From the NCBI GenBank assembly GCA_025786725.1, contig JAHLTZ010000007.1, forward strand, positions 310,001 through 374,000: a DNA stretch of 64,000 nucleotides. The letters run 5' to 3'. Shown in pieces: positions 3,840-28,229 of the stretch (positions are counted from its first letter, which is position 1; every line of letters starts with the position of its first letter). The stretch comes from Syncephalis fuscata S228. Taxonomy: Eukaryota; Fungi; Zoopagomycota. Under the pieces are notes generated by a model, which made no database searches, was not told the DNA's origin, and saw only the letters and a program-made list of their open reading frames with translations. Position numbers and translations under genes: made by a program.

Positions 3840-4695
3840 ATGGCAACACCTGCTCGAAGCTCAAGTCTTTTGACCAAATCGGTAGCCACTGCGGCGGCAA
3901 GTGAGATAGCGCGGAGAGCTTTACAAAGCAGTAGCAACAATAGCGCAGCTTCTTCACCCCCACCGGCCCAGCAAAAGAAAAATGGCAAAGTCTCTAGGAA
4001 TAAAACCACGATGGCTGTAGCCATTGCCCGACCTGTGGCAGCGATGGCTGCCACCGCAGTTACAGATGCTATTATAAAACAACAATTGTCGTCATCGTCG
4101 GCCGCAGCAACACCGCCTGTGCCCCGTCCAGTACACGCGGCTACTGCACCACCAGTTATTATGGTGGCCGAACCATCTTCTTCAAATCAATTCAATAAAA
4201 TACGGCGTAAAACTCGTCCTAATATGCCCCACCACCGGTACAACCGTCTTCTACCTGAGGATCGCGATGCATTTAAAGCGTTTAGATCACGGGCTAAGTG
4301 GCTTGATGGCAAGAAGACCTGTTGCTGTTGCCTCACTGTCGGTGTAGATCCATTGATTGGACTACTACCGGTTGTGGGTGACTTTGCCGGTGTTGTTCTA
4401 GCCACCATGCTGTTGTATACTGCCATGCACACTTGGCAATTACCACGTGCCTTGATTTCTCGTATGATCCTTAATATTGCTATTGATGCCCTGGTAAGTA
4501 ACAATACTGCTGTTTCTTAGATTAGTCCTAACAACAACACATTACTATATGACTGCTTAATAGGTGGGATTTGTGCCAATTATCGGTGATTTGGCCGATT
4601 TCATGTTCAAATGTAACTTGAAAAATTCTGACCTTCTCGAAACATTTTTAATGGAGAAAGCCAGTCTCGCCCAGCAGCCTATGGCAATGGCTTGA
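3840..4695 (+). CDS. DUF4112 family membrane protein
   Basis: Exons 3840-4493 and 4564-4695; GVDPLIGLLPVVGD...RMILNIAIDALVGFVPIIGDLADFMFKCN. Confidence 0.8.
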
Positions 4696-4927
4696 GTACC
4701 GTTATTGCCATTGTTTATTCGTTCTATCCCAGTAGTTATTGGCAACATTGTTTATTTGTTTGTTTTTCTAAAATTTATAAATGCATTTAAAACAATACAC
4801 AGTAATGATTTGCATATTTTGATATTTTACAATGATTTCAAATATAATAATGTTTTAATCATTGTAACAAATAACTTCTAATGTGTATTAATATAAAATA
4901 ACAATCTTTGCAGGCAAGCAAGTATTT

Positions 4928-7316
4928 CTAAGCAGATGATTCATTAAGCGACTTGATAACCGTGTCCAAGGCGCTGTACCATTTGTCACGAATACTACTG
5001 CTATCAGCAGCTAGTAGGTAGGGACGCTCGGGCGTTATTAGCTGGAAGCAAAATGGTCTTTGTTTGGACGGTGGATCTGCTATCATTTGAACTGCTTGTA
5101 CTTGGGCCAAAGGGATTAGCTGGCGTACTGTCGATTCCTATAGTGTTATAACAATGTTTAAATTAGATACTTATATTATATATCAATCAGCTAATTACCT
5201 TTTCATTTTTATAATAGGCTAAACGATTATCACGTAGAACAAACCATCGTTTTTGCCATGCCTAGTCGTTCAAATGTTATTATTAAAATAAAAGACATAA
5301 TAAATAAATGATGCGGGTCTTACCCGAATAATGCCCACCTTGTTATTCTGTGATTGCTTTGTTAAGTAGCCTTGTAAAGGTTGATCAGAGCTATTACCCG
5401 TAACATCTGCAAGTATCGTATCTTCTTGCTGAGATGCGGCTCCTGTATTGATCGATGTTCCCGATTGGTTACTAACGGGTGCACTGCCACTTGTTTTTGC
5501 TGTTCCATGCTGAATACCAGAGCTGTCTACCGATGAGCGCGTTGTGGCCCATGAGGGCAATAATGAACGGCGATGATTGGCTGGCTTTTCTACCGGCGCT
5601 TCTTCTTCTTTGGTAGATGAACGACGGCTTCGTGCGGCTTGGCATGCCTCTCGCAACGCATGTGTCCATCCCAGTAGTTCTTCCGGTGATCCGGCTTGAA
5701 AATAGTATTTGCGACGCGTGGTAAGCACACCAAACACATTCACACGCTTCTTTCGCGGGATGGCCGCCACTGCTTTTACTTGGGCCAAATCGATAATACC
5801 CAACGATTTATATTCCTATTATTTCAATTAATGATGAGGTTCTAACAAAGATTAATTTACTTACACGTTGATCTTTGTAATAAACAAGTTGTGTAGGTCG
5901 TAGTACGAACCAACGCTTTTTCCATATCTATAATATATATTCGCTATTAATATATACTACCTATGACTATCAACTCTATAACTTACCTTTCGCGGCCCTC
6001 CTCGCTTATGGAGCTGGCCACTTTTGATAATATGAGCTGAAGTAAGCGTATTCAGTGTCTCATCCCGTGTAATCATTTCTCCTTCCTCATAATCTTCGTC
6101 TTCGCCTTCATCCAAATCATCTACTTCTTCGGCATCGGCTAGAATGATTGCTGCTGCTTCTTCGTCATCCGACATTAGATCAAATTCATCATCTGCGTAC
6201 TCATCAAAGCTAGTTTTCTCTATATGTTTGTTAATATGCGCATCTTCTTCATTCTGGCTACTCATTGGTGTAGCAGTAATTGCCGCATCTTTATGCAAAC
6301 TACTTTCAGCCATTTCATTAGCTGGTTCAGTCTTGTGCACAGTAGTAGTGGCAACAGATGCAGGTCGGCCAGATGACTCTCTTTGAACTACAAATGTTAC
6401 TGTACGTCCATTGGAAGCACTTGTTGCGCTGATCTCCAATGGTGCTTGTTGTGAATTAGGAGCATTCAGTGCTACGGAGCGGTGAAAATTTGTTTTGTCT
6501 GGCAAGCTAGCGACTGGAGATACGTGGCGTTTAAGAGGCGTTGTATGTTGCGGCTCTTCATCATGTAGTGACGCATTGTCAGAAACGGCAGCTGCACGAG
6601 TCTCCCGGATTGAATGCAGCCATGAAAGCATATCTTCCGGCGATGGTGCTGCAAAGTAAAACTTTCGCTTTGTTGTTACAACGCCAAATACGTTGGCACG
6701 CTTTGACTTGCGCTTTTTTGTTCTTTGAACTTCTGCACATGCCAAAATACTATCCAATGGAATGATGCCCAGCAATTTATACTCCTATATATATATTCAT
6801 GGTTAGCGTCACCAAAATCATATTTTACTAGCATGGTAACCATCGACTAGCGCTGAAGCATTCTATATGTACCTTTTGGTCCTTGTAGTAGACTAGTTCG
6901 CTAGAACGTAATATAAACCAGCGTTTCTTCCAGGCCTAGTTGTATTTAACAGATATGAATACAACCCTGTACAAAATGCCAATGCTTACCTTGCGTATCT
7001 CGCCTCGTTTCATTAGATAGCCGGAATAGATTGTTTGTTCACGGGTGACTTCTGTAAGTTGGCTTTTACTTAGATTCATTGCTTCCAACTCGTATTGCTC
7101 TTCTGATTCATAGTGCAGAGCGGCTTCATCGTGGCCGCCACTTGCTTGTCCAGGCTCATTCGTGCAGTCAAATAGCTCTGGTTCCGAGTCTGATTCATCA
7201 GAAAATGGAATAGGATCGAGCTGAGCTCGTGGCGAGCGGCTGCTGCTGCTGTTCTGTTGTTTGGCCGTCTCGGCGGCGATGCCGGCCGTGGCGCTGCTTT
7301 GTTGCTGGGTTGACAT
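4928..7316 (-). CDS. Protein with three tandem PH domains (Opy1-like)
   Basis: Three copies of G(Y/Q)LxK...W(K/Q)KRWF(I/V)LR...L(V/A)YYK...W, each split by introns at the same two positions. Confidence 0.8.
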
Positions 7317-8102
7317 GATAGAGACAAGTGTCTTATTCTAAAGTACACTGTGCTCTAGTATTGTTATCAAGTGTTTGATGTATAATGCAATAGATGGATA
7401 GATGGATAGATGGGTAAATGAATCACAGACCAAGGAAGATGAGTCTTTACTGAATATTGCAGGGGAAAAGTGAGCGAAGCATGTTACGGGATGGGAATCG
7501 TTGTTGCATGTGTTTCTCTATTAAAAGCGTGACGGGCCGCGTGTCCTTAACCAAGGGGGCTATACTATTTCAAGTTGAACCGCATCAATACTAATTCTGC
7601 CTAATGGAAAAGCCGAACTAACAGCCAATTATTATTGACCACTTTATTCTTTATTCCTTACTATTGACCTGTTATATTATACTTATTGCTTCATTAATGA
7701 TATGTTCTATAATGCTAACCTTTAGCTTTGTAATCCATACAACTACACTCATACAGTCATTCAAACAATGTCAGTAATTTATCTAATTAACTATCTTATC
7801 TCCTTTATTACTATTAAACAATTTATTAGTCTTTATTGTAATCTAGTGGTCAAATGATTATTTTTAATACCATTGAATCTAATGAACATGGTGATGGGTG
7901 GTGAGTGACATTAAAGTCTAAAATACTCATCATTGTAGATTTATTGTCCAGTATGCAAATATTCAGTGTACATATATCCTCTATTCATATATATCATTCC
8001 CATTATATCATATACTGCTATATACTAGTTATGCTATTTTGGATATATTATATTGTTATATGTCCCAATTACATATAACTTGCTAAATGGATTAGGTGAA
8101 TG

Positions 8103-10418: not shown

Positions 10419-11594
10419 TTTTGTGCTGTGTATTACAACTAAAATTTTAAGCGCTTTAGAATATATATTAGAAATTTAAAATTTTAATAATTTACTTTGC
10501 CGTTACATTATGGCGCTATAATAAATTTAATGGCACTTTTGTTATAATTAACAAATATTTAATTGATTTAGAACGTTTTTTAGTCTGTTTGACTAATAAT
10601 TTTAATAAACATGATATAATAATTAAATTATTTATTTATTTAATACACTCATTTTTATTAAATAATAAATCAAAGTGCTTAATCAATCACAATTCTTATA
10701 ACTTATACCCGTTGCTTATATAACTGTATGATATCTTAAAATACGTATCAATTCAATTAATATTATTATATTTTATTATACATGTATTTACTGCTTATAA
10801 TGTGTGTTTAGCAAGTATTAGTACAACTACTGTTCGTGTCTAATTGTTATGCCCGCCTTATTTATACATTAGTCACTGTTTTTGACCTACTTCATTTCAT
10901 CGCTTTAAGTGTCAGTTTTGCTTACTACTTGCATTATACTGCTTTTGTTGAGTAGTTTGACTAAGTTGTTACACATTCTACTATTATTTAAATAATGATA
11001 TTGATCGTTGATTACGTTCACTTATACAGATAAAGTGGCTGTAACTAGTCTTATTAAATGCTGCTAGTTTAATTTAACTATACAAAGCTACTTTGTATGT
11101 TTTGCATGAACATTTTGAACACAAGTTATCACATGCCTAAACGCTGTAGATTTATATAGCATATTTATAATTTAAATGGCCAACATTGTCATGTTATTTG
11201 CTTTATTGATTTTATTGTCTAATTAAAGGCCAATGTTGGCACCACCATAAATTTATATTTAGAAAATAGCATACAAAGTTTTAGCAGATTACTAAATATA
11301 ATTGAAATAAAACTATTGTTTATTACTACATGTTTGCATAGCTGAATAAACACAGCTAAATGCAGTCTTGTTAGTAGTATAATAGTACTGTTGGCTAAAA
11401 GTTGAATAAACTAAAGCATTGAACGGAACTTGATATATGGATGAACTGAAAGGCATACTTGTCAAATGATCTTGTTTTATGCCAAATGGGCACTTAAGGT
11501 GTGCTGAACAATTAAACCGCTGCATTACCAATGCTAACATATTGGAGATGCAAGTTATTTATGCTCATAAACATATACAGCTCATGTCATATAT

Positions 11595-12878
11595 CTAGTA
11601 TATCGGCCAGCGACGTATGATCTCAGTTATTACCTATTAATAAGTGTTATTGAACGTACAACAAATAGTATGTAATTAGTATACAGCTAATTAAAAGCAA
11701 CATTACTTACCGTCTATTAATAGCAATTAGTGAACACACAGCAAATAGTATGCAATTAGTACATAAACAATTAAAAACAACACCACTTACCGGCTATCAA
11801 TATACATTAGTGAACGAACAGCAAATAGTATGCAATCAGTGATAGTTAGCTGCTATGGTGTTTCACTTACGACCTATTCGTACAAGTTGTTAAAAATGCA
11901 TAGTATATAGTGTATGTTCAGCACATAATTAATAAATATGTAATTTCACTTACAACCTGTTATGATTAAATCATTGACAAACACAGTACATATAATGTGG
12001 TGAATATACAGACATCTAATATGCAACATTACTTACATCCTATTAATATTGAGTTATTAGTAACAGCGAATAGCATGAAATTAGCTCATAGCCGATTATT
12101 ATATAACGCCACTTACTAACTATTATATTCAATTATCAATCCATAAATACATAGCATATAAGTGATAAATAGCTAATTGACATGCAATATTACTTACACG
12201 CTATCAATATTAGGTTGTTAATACACAAATAAACACCATGTAATTAGCGTATTTTTAATCAGCATAAAACATTACTTACTAGCTATTCATGTTAAATTAT
12301 TGGCCCACACAATGTATAGCATGCAATTAGTGCGCGGTCAATCAATATATAGAATTACTTACGACCTGTTATATTGCATTGTCAATACACACAGTACATA
12401 GCGTGTAGTTAGAGTATAGGCAACCGATATACAATACCACTTACAAACTATTCATATAAAATTGTTGACATAAACAGTGCATAGCATGCAGTTAGCCCAT
12501 AGTCGCTTAATATACAGTATCACTTACTGCCTATTAATATTAAATTGTCGATACACATAATATGTAGTATTCAGTTAGCGTATATTCAACTAATATTCAG
12601 CACTGCTTACATTCTAATAATAGTAAATTGTTGGTAACGAATAGTATAAGATTTTTGCCCAATTATTTATTATACAGTGCTACTTACTGGCTATTATATT
12701 CAATCGTTGACAAAAAATCATTAGTTATTAATACACTGATAGGCATAATATTGATGCATATTTGTTGTAATTAAAACATACCAGTATTTACTTGAGCTGG
12801 CACGGCATCCACTGTGACTGTATTAGTCACAAAAACTACGAAAAAGACGCAAGCTGCAGTAATGGAAAGCTTCATCAT
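11595..12878 (-). CDS. Small secreted peptide gene with 13 single-codon (3-nt) micro-exons; 15 exons, 54 aa if all are included
   Basis: Exon 1 12878-12792 = MMKLSITAACVFFVVFVTNTVTVDAVPAQ|GTAAAT. Then YAG-NNN-GTAAG at 12690-88, 12613-11, 12530-28, 12447-45, 12365-63, 12282-80, 12200-198, 12119-17, 12039-37, 11956-54, 11873-71, 11793-91 and 11713-11 (PNAFVLRLDVVPT). Last exon 11633-11595 = VITEIIRRWPIY*. Confidence 0.8.
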
Positions 12879-13540
12879 GGTATTGTTTGTTATGGTATTG
12901 CTTGTTGAAACAAAAAAGTAGAATGGATGATAGAGTGAAGTAAGGATACCGTTGATTAGTTGTGTACACTTTATGGCCTATTTAAATCTATAACTATGGT
13001 AACATATTAGCATGCTGATTGTATGGAATATACCATTGATATGCCATGTAAACCAATAGCAACACGTCCACGTGGTAACTTGAAACATGCACAGAGTAAT
13101 AGATTGATAATGTGATAGCATTATGCATATTCTATGTTTCAGCCTATTCGGCAATTACACAAAAATTCGGCGATATCAAGTATCCAGTATATATGTGCTG
13201 TAAACAAACATCAACCTGCTTTTTGTTTCACACTGAAGTCAGATTAAAGTCCAGCTGACCACTGAGTTTTTGAAGCATGCACAGAGTAATAGATGGATAG
13301 CATGTGTCAATATATCTATATATAGATAATATTATGAATATTTGGGGCACAACAATTTAATAGGCAATGATATCATGACTTGTCTTGATATAGAAACAGC
13401 AAAGAATAAAATAATAAAACGCAAAAAATACATAAACATGCAGTCTATTTAGTATGTTTGTTCAGTATTTTACAACATATAAACTATTCCTTACACTTAT
13501 CCTTTTATGCATTTTTTTGCAAAAGTAACGAGCTATAAAC

Positions 13541-15070
13541 ATGATGTCAAATTTGAAATGGAATCAAGTTGCAATGATAAGCAGCATCTTGGCACTAGTA
13601 TTTATTGTTCAGCCTATATTTGCTACACCGCGTAAAGCCAATTTACCCGAAGGTAGATTATTATACCAGATACTTTATGCGTCCATACTAATAGCATTGA
13701 TATATAGATGTATTTGAACCTGATCCACCGCAAGTATACGATGGTATTGATATACCCGCTGGATTTGAACAAGGTGAAGAGACATCATGGGAGCAACAAC
13801 TACAAGGCATGGATGTGAATGTCATGTGCCGCATACGAAACAATCTCAATGATAAATTTCGATTTCTTCAGGTATTTATTAAATATTGCCAATATTACAA
13901 CTAGCTAAGCAATTATAAATCTAGGACCTTAGCCGCAAACGAGTGCTATTACAAAATGATCCCGGACGCCAGTATGTTTTACACCCGCAACGCTCGTTCA
14001 CTTTTCGAGGCAAGCGCTGTTTTGTTATGCCTCGCTCAGTTGATGAAAATTTGAATGACTTTTATTTAAATTACATACCATCTTTGGCTGAAGCTAAATC
14101 GATTTTATCATTTTTCACTAAATTGATACAAGGTAGGCCTAGCCGATATGTTTGAGTATGCACAGTAGCTCATAATGAAATATGATTAGGTATTAATTAT
14201 ATCCACAAAGTTGGATGGACCAACATTAGTTTAAATGAGTTCAGTAAGAAAATGTCGCATTAACATTTAAGCCATTGCTAACTATAAATTATAGGCATTG
14301 TTGTTAGATCAAATCTCAGTAAATATCCTGTTATCAATGTAATGAAAATTGAACAGCTAAGACGCATCAAATTTAAAAACAATATTGTAGTACTGATAGC
14401 TGCACCTCAAATGAAACTATTATATCTTCCTGAATGGATCAAAAATACTAAAATCGATCCACGTAAGGCTGATCTATGGAGAATCGGCGAACTTTTTTAT
14501 GCTTTCCAATATGAATTCTACTTTAAGATGCCAAAAAAATCCACTAAGCAAATTTTAGAAGAAACTTTTTCCAAAATGCCAGACGTTAAGCCAGAACTCC
14601 ACGACACACAACAGCAGTTCAAAAGATTTATGCCATACTTCAAGAAACTTATTGAAGATAGCTATCAATCTGGATTAATAACAAAAAATAACGGTCGAGC
14701 TATTCTATTAAATACGAACAGCGGATTTCTAAAGAACAGCATTGATATATCGTTGTCGCCAATCAAGCAAATTTATTTAACGATAGAAATGCTAGACTTA
14801 TTCATTGCTGCGCAAAACTGTGTTTTTGGAAATAAGCCATTGCGAGGATACTCACAGTTTTTGCTTAATGGGCTCTTCCAACTAGGAATATATAGCATGC
14901 TTCCTGATATATATATAGCACATCCAAATGAATATACTCCCGTATTAGACATGCTAAATAGGCTGCTAACACTCAATCCCGAAGAGCGATTAACGCCGGA
15001 CCAATACTTGAGACAATTTGATAGAAATACAAATGCCAACCTTTTGCATGTATCTGATCAACAAAATTAA
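13541..15070 (+). CDS. Secreted protein-kinase-fold protein (probable pseudokinase), 437 aa
   Basis: Exons 13541-13652, 13708-13871, 13925-14132, 14190-14243 and 14295-15070 splice in frame. N-terminal signal peptide (MISSILALVFIVQPIFA). Kinase C-lobe motifs GINYIHKVGW, YLPEW, KADLWRIG and LLTLNPEERLT; no HRD or DFG. Confidence 0.75.
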
Positions 15071-23597: not shown

Positions 23598-23770
23598 TTG
23601 CGTTTGTCGCACCGTTATTTTTGCGTTTGTCGCACCGTTTATTTTGCGTTTGTCGCACCGTTATTTTTGCGTTTGTCGCACCGTTTATTTTTGCGTTTGT
23701 CGCACCGTTTATTTTGCGTTTGTCGCACCGTTATTTTGCGTTTGTCGCACCGTATATCGCGTTTGTCGCA
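23598..23770 (+). repeat. 8-copy ~22-24-bp tandem repeat in the retroelement leader
   Basis: (T)GCGTTTGTCGCA(CCGT) repeated with T/A-rich linkers. Confidence 0.9.
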
Positions 23771-23886
23771 TTGTCCTCTTTTCAATTTTATTTTATTTTT
23801 GCTTATCAGTGTTTGAAAATAAGCACCGCTGTTTTAAAATTACGATTCAGTATATAGTACACGTTGAGACCGATTTTATTCTCACC

Positions 23887-24729
23887 ATGAATTCCCGCTC
23901 ACCACTCACACACACCGAAAAGTTCACCGGTGATTCCAGTTTGCCTGTGGAACATTGGTGTAACATGGTAGAAGACGCATGGGAATTGGGTACATTTACA
24001 GACGAACAAAAACGTATAATGGCGTCCCAACAACTATCGGGACCAGCGGCAGTTTGGTATCAATCGATACGCGGCGGTAATACGCCATATAGCACGTGGG
24101 AACAACTAAGGGACGGAATTTTAGAACGTTTTGGTGGCAATCGATCAGCGGACATCGCGCGTTTGGAACTCACACGATTGCGCTGGACAGAAGATAAAGA
24201 CATTGAAGAACATATTACAAATTTCACAGCACTGCGTAGTCGAATTCCAGATGCCGCTGACATGGAATTGGTTACGGCATTTCGACTTACATTGCCGCCG
24301 GAATACTTGACCGATTCGATACATAATAAACCCACCAATATTAACGAAGCTTACGCTTCCACACGTGCTTTCTATTACTCAAGGAAACATGGATTACAAC
24401 ACTTAATACCACCACCAACTAAATCTAATAACGGCCCAACACCAATGGATTTAGATACTATAGTCCAAGCTTTAAATAGTTTAGGTTTTATTAATAATAG
24501 CAACAGCAGCAATTACAATAACCGTAAAAATTACAATAACGGGCCTAGATGTTACACATGTAACAAACGTGGCCATCTAGCCAGAAATTGTAATCGCAAT
24601 AACAACCGTAATTACAATAACCGCGATAACAACAATCAACAGCAATCTAACAGCTTAGATTTACAATCAACAAATGTCGACGTCCAAGCAAACAACAACG
24701 TAATTCAGGGAAACGACAACCGTCAGTAA
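23887..24729 (+). CDS. gag: Gag (280 aa) with CCHC zinc knuckle
   Basis: EKFTGD...A..W...W..L..GILERFG capsid pattern, [22 protein letters not shown]. Confidence 0.9.
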
Positions 24730-24766
24730 TTAAGTGCGGCACACTTACTGACGGCCAGGTTGCCGC
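24708..24766 (+). promoter_or_regulatory. -1 ribosomal frameshift signal (G GGA AAC plus H-type pseudoknot)
   Basis: In-frame slippery heptamer 24708-24714, 5-nt spacer, stem 1 CCGTCAGTAA/TTACTGACGG, stem 2 GCGGCA/TGCCGC; pol is in the -1 frame. Confidence 0.85.
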
Positions 24767-27700
24767 TAATACTCCGATACCACCCGGATTTGAGCAGTCT
24801 ACACTCATTCAAGGTCGCGCTAGCTCCGGTTTAATTACAGTAGCACCCAAAATCAATGGTGTTCCAGCCCATGTATTAATCGATTCTGGTGCATCCACCA
24901 ACTTTATGGATATTGAATTTGCCAAGAGGGCTCAAGTACATGTTACGAAACAAGCAAATTCAGCCAATGTAAAGTTGGGAAATGGTATGGAGTGCGGTGT
25001 ATCTGGTACTGCTAATAAAGTGCCTATTATTTTCAATTATCTGAAAGAACAAATTGATTTTACTATTATGAAATTGGGCAACTATAATGCAGTGCTGGGT
25101 ATGCCATGGCTAAGAAAACATGAAGCGCAAGTAGATTGGAAGACCGGTGTTATTAATTCTAATTGTAATTCAGCACCCAAAAGTACATTAGAAATTACCG
25201 ACAAAATTCAGCCTTCATTCATGTCAATAGAAGAAGTCGAGCAAACAGAAGCCAATGATATGATTTTATTAGCGATGATAAAAGAAAACAAAGAAAAAAA
25301 TGATACATCGTTAAATGGCCGTTACGCGCGATTGTTGGGTGAATTTGCCGATGTTGGACCAGAAGAATTACCACCTGGTTTACCACCAAAAAGAGACATT
25401 GATATACGTATCAATTTGGTGCCACATCAGCAGCCACCATTTCGGCCTACATACCATCTGGCAAAGAAAGAGTTAGACGAGTTGAAGAAACAGATCGATG
25501 ATTTGTTAGAAAAAGGCTTTATTAGGCCTAGTACATCACCATTTGGTGCACCTGTACTATTTGTGCGGAAGAAAGGAGGTGATTTACGTATGTGTGTGGA
25601 TTACAGAATGTTAAACGCACAAACAATTCGTGATCGTTATGCGTTGCCACTGATCGATGAATTATTCGATCAGTTACATGGGGCGAAAGTATTCTCAAAA
25701 ATAGATTTGAGAAGTGGATATCATCAAATAAGAGTAAATGAGGATGATATTCACAAAACAGCGTTTAGAACGCGCTATGGGCATTATGAGTGGACGGTGA
25801 TGGGATTTGGATTGACTAATGCACCGTCAGTATTTATGCGATTAATGCATAATGTATTTCATAAATTACTAGACAAGTGTGTAGTGGTATTTTTGGATGA
25901 TATTTTAATATTTAGTAAAAATCATACCGAACATGAGTGGCACTTACGGCAAGTGTTACAATTACTAAGAGAAAACAAATTATATGCCAAATTAAGCAAA
26001 TGTGAATTTGGTAAAGATGAGGTGGAATTTTTGGGACATATTGTTAGTGGCGATGGTATAAGACCACTACACGATAAAGTAATGGCTATTGCAAATTGGC
26101 CTATACCAAACAATCTGAAAGAACTGCGCTCTTTCCTCGGATTAACTGGCTATTATAGACGGTTTATTCGTGGATATGCTGATACTGCACGGCATTTAAG
26201 TCAATTGACTAAGAATGATGAGCCATTCACATGGGGAGATAATCAAAATACAGCATTTGACACACTACGTAATGCGATAGTTACAGCACCGGTATTGGCT
26301 ATACCAAATGTTAATGCACCATTTATCGTTACTACAGATGCATCTGATTATGCAATTGGTGCAGTATTATCACAAATAACCGATAATAATGAACATCCTG
26401 TTGCATTTATGTCACGTATATTACAGGCAGCCGAAAAGAATTATGCTACATACGATAAAGAAATGTTAGCTATTCTAGAAGCTACTAAGTTATGGCGCCC
26501 ATATCTTAGTTATGGCCATTTCGTAATATATACTGACCATGCACCGCTTACGCGCCTGTTTAAGCAAAAGGAAATGTCATCACGCCAAACGCGTTGGATT
26601 GAGCAGTTGCATCAATATGATTTTGATATCATATATAAGCCAGGCCGTGCTAATGTTGTAGCCGATGCATTATCACGACGTACATCGCCTAGTTATAACG
26701 CTATAAATGCTACAAATCTCTCTTTATTCCAACAGCGTGTTTTAGCTGGTTACGATCATGATGAACACTTTACAGGTGTAAAGAATGTTCTTATGGGAGG
26801 AAGGGCTGCAGGCAATGCTGCGGCAGTTAAAATTTCGCGACATTTTCGGCTTGATGATCATGGATTAATGTACGAGTTAAAAGACATTGAACCACGATTA
26901 TGCATACCAAATTACGATAATCTATATTTGGATATACTTAATGATCATCACGATGCAGCTGCTCACTTCGGCGAAGAAAAGACTATTGCAGCCATTAAGC
27001 GTAAATATTATTGGCCTGGATTGTCCAACATGACAAAGCGTTATATTAGGTCATGTGAAGTGTGCCAACGCACTAAACACTCCCAGCAGTTACCTGGTGG
27101 ACTATTACAACCACTTCAAATTCCGGAAGGACGTTGGCGCGATATTGCAATGGATTTTATAGTGCAATTGCCACGTACTAGTAGTGGTTATGATGCTATT
27201 TTTGTTGTAATCGACCGCTTTACTAAGCGCGCTCACTTCGTACCGATGAAGACGACAGCTACGGCTGTTGACGTTGCACAATTGTTCATGCAGAACATTG
27301 TACGTCTTCATGGCATGCCCCGCTCTATTGTATGCGACCGTGACGCCAAGTTTACCAGTAAATTTTGGCAAGAACTACATAAAATACTTAACGTACGTAT
27401 ATTTATGTCAACAGCATTTCATCCCGAAACAGATGGCCAAACAGAACGCGTAAACCGCACGCTAGAACAATTATTACGTACATGCGTTAACTATCAGCAA
27501 AATGACTGGGATCAACATTTAGCATTAGTTGAATTTGCGTACAATAATGCTAAGCAGTCATCAACTGGTAAATCGCCATTCTATACTGATTTGGGTAGCC
27601 ACCCCTACATGCCAGACGATTTAGTACGACAACACAACTTCGGCAACAAAACTAACGTGCAAAGTACTGCTGCATTCCTGCAAAAGATGAATGACATTTA

Positions 27701-28229
27701 TTTAGAAACACGCGAAGCGTTAAAGAAAGCACAAGAACGACAAAAACAATATGCAGATCAGAAACGAAGAGAAGTAGAATTTAAAGTTGACGATATGGTG
27801 CTGTTATCAACAAAGAATTTGACACCAGAAGCGGAACGTGAACGACCAAAACGTAAATTGGCTCATCAATTTACGGGACCATTTAAGGTCATTCAACGGG
27901 TATCGACTGTAGCGTACAAACTACAATTAGCACCTAACATGAAAATGCACAATGTGTTCCATGTTAGTCTGCTAAAGAAGTACGAAGAAAACCCGCCAGA
28001 GTTTATAGATCGTTACCCGCCACCGCCACCACCGGAAATAATAGATGGCAACGAAGAATACGAAGTAGAAAGCATATTAGCTAAACGGGTCAAACGCAAC
28101 AAAATAGAATATCTCGTTAAATGGAAAGGCTATGCGGAACATGATGCAACCTGGCAATCGTTACGTGACTTAGACAACGCATCAATACTAGTACAAGAGT
28201 ATGAAAAGCAACACCAGAGTCGGCGTTAA
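24708..28229 (+). CDS. pol: Pol: protease-RT-RNase H-integrase-chromodomain
   Basis: The frame is open upstream of the track's Met and contains LIDSGAS. RT FLDD, RNase H TDAS, HHCC, integrase core ([19 protein letters not shown]), GPF, chromodomain YEVESIL...YLVKWKGY. Confidence 0.95.

Follow-up and report, generated by a model that had tools for sequence, protein, structure and literature searches.

The minus strand of positions 11595-12878 in the 64-kb window considered here contains what is very probably a functional, expressed protein-coding gene of 15 exons and 14 short introns (74-91 nucleotides, nt). The window is the whole analysed stretch of 64,000 nt from Syncephalis fuscata S228 (GenBank assembly GCA_025786725.1, contig JAHLTZ010000007.1, positions 310,001 to 374,000 of the forward strand). 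Thirteen consecutive internal exons of this gene are only 3 nt long, and all of them are present, in genomic order, in a transcript contig. The gene belongs to a large family of candidate secreted cysteine-rich peptides, many of which are encoded in arrays of the same kind. S. fuscata is a member of Zoopagomycota and, like its genus (PMC13188720), an obligate mycoparasite of other fungi; it does not cause disease in humans, animals or crop plants. Two tubulin ORFs of the assembly are identical to the NCBI proteins KAI9598425.1 and KAI9591933.1, both of which carry the label Syncephalis fuscata.

The pattern YAG-NNN-GTAAG occurs 13 times in the window, always on the minus strand, between positions 11711 and 12693 and with a spacing of 77-83 nt. 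The same scan found no matches on the plus strand and none elsewhere in the 64 kb. The triplets of the array, in minus-strand order, are CCA AAT GCA TTT GTC CTA CGT TTA GAT GTT GTC CCG ACG. The initial annotation of the locus, made from the sequence letters, had described these 13 units, with exactly 3 nt between acceptor and donor, as well as an upstream ATG-led exon with a hydrophobic N-terminus. The pattern scan agrees with this description, the triplets are read back identically from the window, and the ATG at 12878 is followed by a hydrophobic stretch. A genome scan for periodic arrays of this kind, also proposed there, found the two-unit pattern (adjacent pairs) 3270 times in the 29.4-Mb assembly, as compared to 0 for the reversed-pattern control. 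Thus a chance origin of the arrays is excluded.

Transcript data come from a public run of 2017 (run X1), which is stored as contigs and whose type, "RNA?", is a guess. Of the words sampled from the locus, 19% are present in the run, which is roughly the exonic share. One complementary DNA (cDNA) contig of 400 nt (record 2; depth 778, contig depth being no measure of expression) was aligned to window positions 11200-13100 with 0 mismatches. It follows the window from 12932 to 12782, then has 38 letters that come from neither flank, and then continues from 11634 to 11424. After reverse complementation these 38 letters read the triplets given above, from CCA to CCG AC, and the G of the final ACG is absorbed into the alignment at 11634. 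The 38 letters together with this G make up the 13 triplets in genomic order, and therefore all 3-nt exons are spliced and included.

The assembly contains a second copy of the gene (G000:C336:34991-38199, L044), 98.96% identical over 1919 nt. The copies differ by 20 substitutions and 0 indels, with 0 differences in the micro-exons and two in exon 1. Possibly the second copy is a haplotig or arose by recent duplication. At positions 12855, 12845, 11582 and 11550, where the copies differ, the contig has the window alleles. Only these two loci in the assembly are near-identical to exon 1. A processed genomic copy was considered as the source of the spliced contig and ruled out, since both loci carry the introns. 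In positions 11392-11519 the summed depth of run X1 contigs is 4180-7327, as compared to 778 for the gene's own contig. This excess is probably a pile-up of transcripts from many family members on the 3' untranslated region (UTR) shared with paralogs.

The contig also defines the reading frame. The joint places the donor of exon 1 at GTATGT (12781), 10 nt past GTAAAT at 12791, and the coding part of exon 1 is 97 nt long and ends in phase 1. Therefore every intron is in phase 1 and each triplet splits two codons. Exon 1 ends with ...AATACTG, and the last exon starts with GTAATAACTGAG and contributes G|GT AAT AAC TGA, the stop codon being at 11625-11623. The coding sequence joined from the 15 exons by a local script has 147 nt, that is, 48 codons and the stop. 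The initial annotation had used the GTAAAT site, which gave a 29-codon exon 1 with a phase-0 donor, a 12-codon last exon VITEIIRRWPIY-TAG, and the product PNAFVLRLDVVPT...VITEIIRRWPIY. This phase-0 model is excluded by the cDNA joint at 12782/12781 and by the homology of the GTATGT donor in the family (see below), and its product is in the wrong frame. The initial annotation had also noted that all triplets are sense codons. However, TAA and TAG are nearly absent as whole triplets genome-wide (2 of 2478), so their absence here is no evidence for that frame. This scarcity is most likely caused by competing splice sites: with TAG a tandem acceptor would arise, and with TAA before GT a shifted GTAAGT. 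The broader claim, a secreted-peptide gene in which consecutive 3-nt exons follow a signal-peptide exon, is supported, and according to the contig the gene is expressed and spliced.

The same frame is seen in array statistics, compiled for 17 distinct parsed arrays and for genome-wide pattern counts. The 17 arrays contain 417 introns with median length 78 nt, 391 exons of 3 nt and 24 exons of 6 nt. Among the introns, 349 have GTAAGT donors, 8 have GCAAGT donors (GC-AG introns), and 372 have ATAG acceptors. The GC-AG introns lie inside the arrays of L035, L050, L174, L178-L181, L189 and L190, and in these arrays 6-nt exons recur at the third position after a TTAG acceptor. In the phase-1 frame, as set by exon 1, 2 of 424 codons are stops and 17% encode cysteine (Cys). 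The frame of whole triplets has 4 stops in 440 codons and 0.9% Cys, and the third frame has 34 stops in 425 codons and 3.5% Cys. Over 1000 shuffles of the exon order the number of phase-1 stops is 24.6 +/- 3.8 and never falls below 10, as compared to the real value of 2. The 3270 adjacent pairs of the genome contain 401 T|GY junctions, encoding Cys across the intron, 0 T|GA junctions, 144 V|GA junctions, and 9 T|AR junctions.

Translation of the joined coding sequence gives a precursor of 48 amino acids (aa) with four Cys. It starts with 32 residues from exon 1 (12783-12878, minus strand), continues with AKCICPTFRCCPD encoded via the micro-exons, and ends with GNN before the TGA stop. All four Cys codons are split by introns (T|GC, T|GT, T|GT and T|GT). 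Indeed, each mature residue is built from two neighbouring exons because the introns are in phase 1, and therefore the product requires ordered, complete and correct splicing. By the -3/-1 rule and the family alignment, the signal peptide would be cut after ..VDA, leaving the linker VPAQVNT in exon 1. The predicted secreted peptide would thus have about 23 aa and end with ...AKCICPTFRCCPDGNN, and its four Cys would be expected to form two disulfides. Its role may lie in interactions with the host fungus or competitors.

The peptide encoded by exon 1 aligns with the first exons of a family of "MKLSI..." (MKLSIAVVC...) pre(pro)peptides. A protein search of the genome with one such first exon of an array produced 323 first-look candidates. 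All 150 of the 150 that were scored had E below 3e-7, and by this similarity the family comprises at least 150 loci. In about half of the rows the open frame is only 39-43 aa long, that is, an intron follows immediately; in the others it has 50-146 aa. In all arrays inspected at other places of the genome, the first exon reads MKLSIAVVCTIVVA...MVDA(K/N)PALVRR plus one or two further residues. The G|GTATGT phase-1 junction of exon 1 is conserved in 25 of the 27 family genes examined.

At the DNA level, exon 1 of the window gene matches about 11 paralogs with 69-76% identity (~75%). The upstream region 12879-13080 is 70-75% identical to 12 paralog loci over about 100-130 nt (blastn). The distal 3' UTR has counterparts at the 3' ends of 25 paralog loci (68-77% identity), some of them lacking micro-exons. 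Judging from these alignments, the window gene is a diverged and atypical member of the family (exon 1 ~75%, no RR site) that still has the common chassis. This chassis would consist of the promoter region, the signal/pro exon, the phase-1 donor and the 3' UTR, and the mature Cys-rich part appears to be hypervariable. The mature regions are encoded either by one normal exon or by arrays of 3-nt, sometimes 6-nt, exons. In a typical paralog the mature part follows the RR site and has six Cys in the pattern CxxCxxxC ... CxxxCxxxC. In the window gene the number of Cys in the mature region is even (four), as in the paralogs parsed. No Pfam domain scores above the threshold for this family.

Paralogs without micro-exons include L046:1518-1712:+ (= G000:C350; it has an inverted twin, L047) and L049 (minus strand). 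Genes of this type have the promoter region, the signal/pro exon and the 3' UTR of the family, and their Cys-rich part lies in one continuous exon. In particular, L046 is an open reading frame (ORF) of 64 aa with the family signal/pro part and a tail with four Cys. This type could be related to the arrays by either intron loss via cDNA or intron gain. A protein homology search with L046 identified only two annotated proteins, both from S. fuscata and both without micro-exons. Thus, as had been predicted initially, the window gene appears to have been missed by annotation. Some arrays seem broken. L034 (G000:C1:474000-480000) breaks off abruptly and gives way to unrelated DNA of higher GC content; L035, its inverted twin, extends further. 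The arrays of L181 and L188 contain in-frame stops, so these loci could be pseudogenes or have an early C-terminus.

The stretches between the exons of the window gene (74-91 nt) are mutually homologous, with 56-78% pairwise identity. They match the 80-nt consensus to which 374 distinct introns of the genome align, with 69-81% identity between each window intron and its closest counterpart from another array. The consensus is conserved over its full length (60-99% per column). RNAalifold applied to 300 introns found no consensus secondary structure, the 14 window introns fold no better than shuffled sequences (z-scores from -0.3 to +1.3, positive in 12 of 14), and Rfam has no match for the introns at E up to 1. 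A "zipper stem" pairing the 5' and 3' splice sites of an intron was considered and rejected, as there is neither an RNAalifold consensus nor a folding gain over shuffles.

Conservation of the introns may reflect their recent multiplication together with selection for strong and accessible intronic splice signals. A 3-nt exon has nothing further to offer for recognition. The introns would be spliced by intron definition, one after another, using these near-consensus signals. Adjacent introns are likely removed sequentially, since the 3' and 5' sites, being 3 nt apart, cannot both be occupied. The arrays may grow by duplication of "intron + 3 nt" modules. Blocks of near-identical units in some arrays, e.g. 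L051, and the pair of window introns I13 and I14, which are 77% similar, point to such duplication. The many introns of the arrays, thousands in number, contrast with the housekeeping genes for alpha- and beta-tubulin in the assembly (L031, L032, L033), each of which is one intron-free ORF of about 450 aa.

One possibility is that the 3-nt exons are cassettes, whose variable skipping would produce a library of peptides from one gene. Such a splicing-based diversifier was the function proposed initially. Indeed, all internal exons have 3 nt, so that skipping keeps the frame, and micro-exon genes (MEGs) of Schistosoma have been reported to vary by alternative splicing (PMC10526429). However, the full 39-nt insert with all 13 exons in order is the only spliced form recovered among the run X1 contigs, at high contig depth. 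No skipped form was seen, with the reservation that contigs lose rare variants and minor isoforms could exist. Besides, the Cys codons rely on ordered joining, as they are split by introns, and skipping would remove or shift Cys and thus yield products with odd numbers of Cys, whereas the paralogs retain regular frameworks with even numbers. Finally, at least 150 paralogs already supply diversity. The initial annotation itself had stated that a single invariant isoform with all exons would confirm the gene and refute diversification; this is what the evidence so far looks like, and we consider the diversifier unlikely. Another possibility is that the product of the locus is the introns of about 80 nt, processed for instance to small RNAs, and the spliced exons are an untranslated by-product. 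This would agree with the full-length conservation of the introns genome-wide (60-99% per column) next to variable triplets. It is made extremely improbable by the phase-1 coding signature (across introns 401 TGY and 0 TGA; Cys content 17%), by the conserved signal-peptide exon, and by the similar Cys-rich peptides encoded in paralogs without micro-exons. The absence of an Rfam match, of an RNAalifold structure and of a folding gain over shuffles also argues against it.

The window gene could also be a transcribed relic, that is, a decaying member of the family that is still spliced and no longer yields a useful peptide. It is the most diverged member seen (~75% nucleotide identity in exon 1), its introns are old (56-78% mutual identity), it has no RR site and only four Cys, and other arrays are visibly damaged (the shortened L034 and the in-frame stops in L181 and L188). 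On the other hand, its ORF is intact, the number of Cys is even, 14 of 14 splice-site pairs are intact, and the contig depth is high. The 99% identical copy without changes in the micro-exons points in the same direction, weakly, given 20 differences in 1919 nt. A relic is thus very unlikely. Tentatively, we suggest that the 3-nt exons may be codon cassettes: unequal crossing-over or gene conversion between the introns of about 80 nt, in the same array or in different ones, would insert, remove or exchange single residues with the frame kept, and in this way rapidly diversify several hundred secreted peptides of the mycoparasite. Such genes could form a widespread unannotated class in soil and gut eukaryotes, and low-level skipping may add to the diversity.

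Several observations weigh against a functional peptide gene as described above. Unlike most paralogs, the window gene has no RR (Kex2-type) site ahead of the mature region: exon 1 ends with ...VDAVPAQVNT, as compared to ...VDA(K/N)PALVRR in the paralogs. The Cys pattern is C-x-C-x5-CC and not the CxxCxxxC...CxxxCxxxC of the paralogs. Therefore processing and fold of the window peptide may differ from those of its relatives. That run X1 is RNA is a guess, and its contigs show neither isoform ratios, nor transcript ends, nor strand. The peptide is known here from the genome and the transcript contig, and its function is wholly inferred.

Neither runs of 3-nt exons nor micro-exon genes in Syncephalis or any other fungus were found in the literature, subscription journals being outside the coverage. 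The matches were limited to isolated 3-nt exons, MEGs and bicycle genes. Hence the architecture is provisionally considered new. In the conotoxin superfamilies of cone snails, large families of paralogs combine a conserved signal/pro region with a hypervariable Cys-rich mature peptide. The analogy is in the family logic only: the organisms are unrelated, conotoxins have ordinary exons, and no homology is claimed. Introners of Micromonas and fungal introner-like elements are thousands of near-identical spliceosomal introns in one genome that have spread into unrelated genes. The introns described here are similar in being near-identical spliceosomal introns that would have multiplied recently in one genome. 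However, introners are dispersed, whereas the array copies are tandem, each with 3 nt of exon. All intron copies that we looked at are in tandem within arrays of this one gene family.

The MEGs of Schistosoma have exons of 3-81 bp, encode secreted products and form gene families (PMC10526429). The likeness in architecture includes a parasitic organism, a signal-peptide first exon, tiny exons in multiples of three, and families. Most of the coding sequence of the window gene between the signal-peptide exon and the last exon is likewise in tiny symmetric exons. The differences are that most MEG exons are longer than 3 nt, the introns are long (up to 5 kb) and unrelated, and alternative splicing is documented, whereas in the S. 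fuscata family nearly all internal exons have 3 nt, and the homologous introns of about 80 nt are all in phase 1 and make the locus look like an 81-bp satellite. The bicycle genes of the aphid Hormaphis cornu and others form a large family of secreted Cys-containing putative effectors with many micro-exons, which are hard to find by sequence (PMC9168663). They are similar to the window gene in that nearly all internal exons have one phase. However, they are animal genes with phase-2 introns and about 17 exons on average; these exons, although small, exceed the size of a codon. Their proteins have CYC motifs and a much greater length, and homologous tandem introns have not been reported. Neither the CYC pair nor phase-2 introns were found in the window gene, where the introns are in phase 1, so the likeness to bicycle genes is an analogy only.

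Isolated 3-nt exons are known to be spliced (PMC7392893, PMC11162997). In recursive-splicing ratchet points (AG|GTAAGT) and in 3-nt exons such as those of Drosophila hth and human RPS24, the acceptor also nearly abuts the donor and introns are removed sequentially. In these known examples a single site lies within a long intron or a single micro-exon is involved, whereas the S. fuscata arrays have 13-42 consecutive 3-nt exons that carry the whole mature coding sequence. Overall, five features distinguish the S. fuscata genes from MEGs and bicycle genes: codon-sized exons, a mature peptide encoded almost entirely in them, introns from one family of short sequences, occurrence in a fungus, and thousands of micro-exons.

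Accurate joining of 3-nt exons in uninterrupted series of 13 to over 40 is well beyond the limits on exon size derived from animals. Such an exon has no room for an enhancer and hardly any for pairing with U1. The arrays lend themselves to studies of intron definition, of ordered or recursive removal of introns, and of how closely a 3' and a 5' splice site can be spaced. At least 150 predicted secreted-peptide genes in a 29-Mb genome would be invisible to ORF finders, standard gene predictors and RNA-seq aligners. An "intron + codon" module, being neutral to the frame, could plausibly drive variation in both the length and the sequence of peptides. S. fuscata is an obligate parasite with hosts in Mucorales and Mortierellales, and members of the family are obvious candidates for its effectors or for antifungal peptides.

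The coordinates of the gene are collected in the table. The 5' UTR at 12879-12932 contains no upstream ATG.

Table. Features of the micro-exon gene, in window coordinates
Feature	Position	Strand	Basis
Upstream region common with paralogs (candidate promoter and 5' leader)	12931..13058	-	blastn; putative promoter function
TATA-like TTTAAATAG	12978-12986	-	read in upstream region
5' UTR, minimum extent	12879..12932	-	contig starts at 12932; 0 mismatches over 12782-12932
Exon 1, coding, 97 nt = 32 codons + 1 base, phase 1	12782..12878	-	cDNA contig, followed by CCA
Intron 1, 91 nt, GTATGT donor, ATAG acceptor	12691..12781	-	cDNA joint
Array of thirteen 3-nt exons with introns 2-13	11711..12690	-	pattern scan and cDNA contig
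3-nt exons 1-5	12690-12688, 12613-11, 12530-28, 12447-45, 12365-63	-	
3-nt exons 6-10	12282-80, 12200-198, 12119-17, 12039-37, 11956-54	-	
3-nt exons 11-13	11873-71, 11793-91, 11713-11	-	
Introns 2-13, 74-80 nt; donors 11 GTAAGT + 1 GTAAGC; acceptors 10 TAG + 2 CAG	within 11711..12690	-	
Intron 14, 77 nt	11634..11710	-	cDNA contig
Last exon, coding, (G)GT AAT AAC TGA, stop 11625-11623	11623..11633	-	cDNA contig
3' UTR	11296..11622	-	contig down to 11424; poly(A) site inferred
Distal 3' UTR common with paralogs	about 11478-11296	-	AATAAA at 11324-11319

A three-unit array scan identified runs of AG-NNN-GTAAGT with units 60-110 nt apart in at least 120 metagenome contigs (L053-L172, e.g. L161, L127, L077). 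They include plain satellites as well as arrays with diversified triplets; the latter represent at least three intron families, unrelated to each other and to that of S. fuscata, one of which, with low GC content (16-24%), comprises 23 arrays. The longest run has 49 units (L161). In L068 and L084 (minus strand) a signal-peptide-like first exon lies immediately upstream of the array and ends in phase 0, and therefore the triplets of these arrays would be whole codons. No blastn match links the intron consensus of S. fuscata with the metagenome arrays, and thus they are not close relatives. The metagenome arrays suggest a general blind spot of annotation.

Elsewhere in the window, a Ty3/gypsy-type retrotransposon occupies positions 23644-28229 of the plus strand. 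It has a gag ORF and a pol ORF of 1107 aa with reverse transcriptase, RNase H, integrase and chromodomain. The divergently transcribed neighbour of the micro-exon gene (13541-15070, plus strand) contains an ORF at 14342-15070 with a weak, sub-threshold match to protein kinases (Pfam, E 2e-4).

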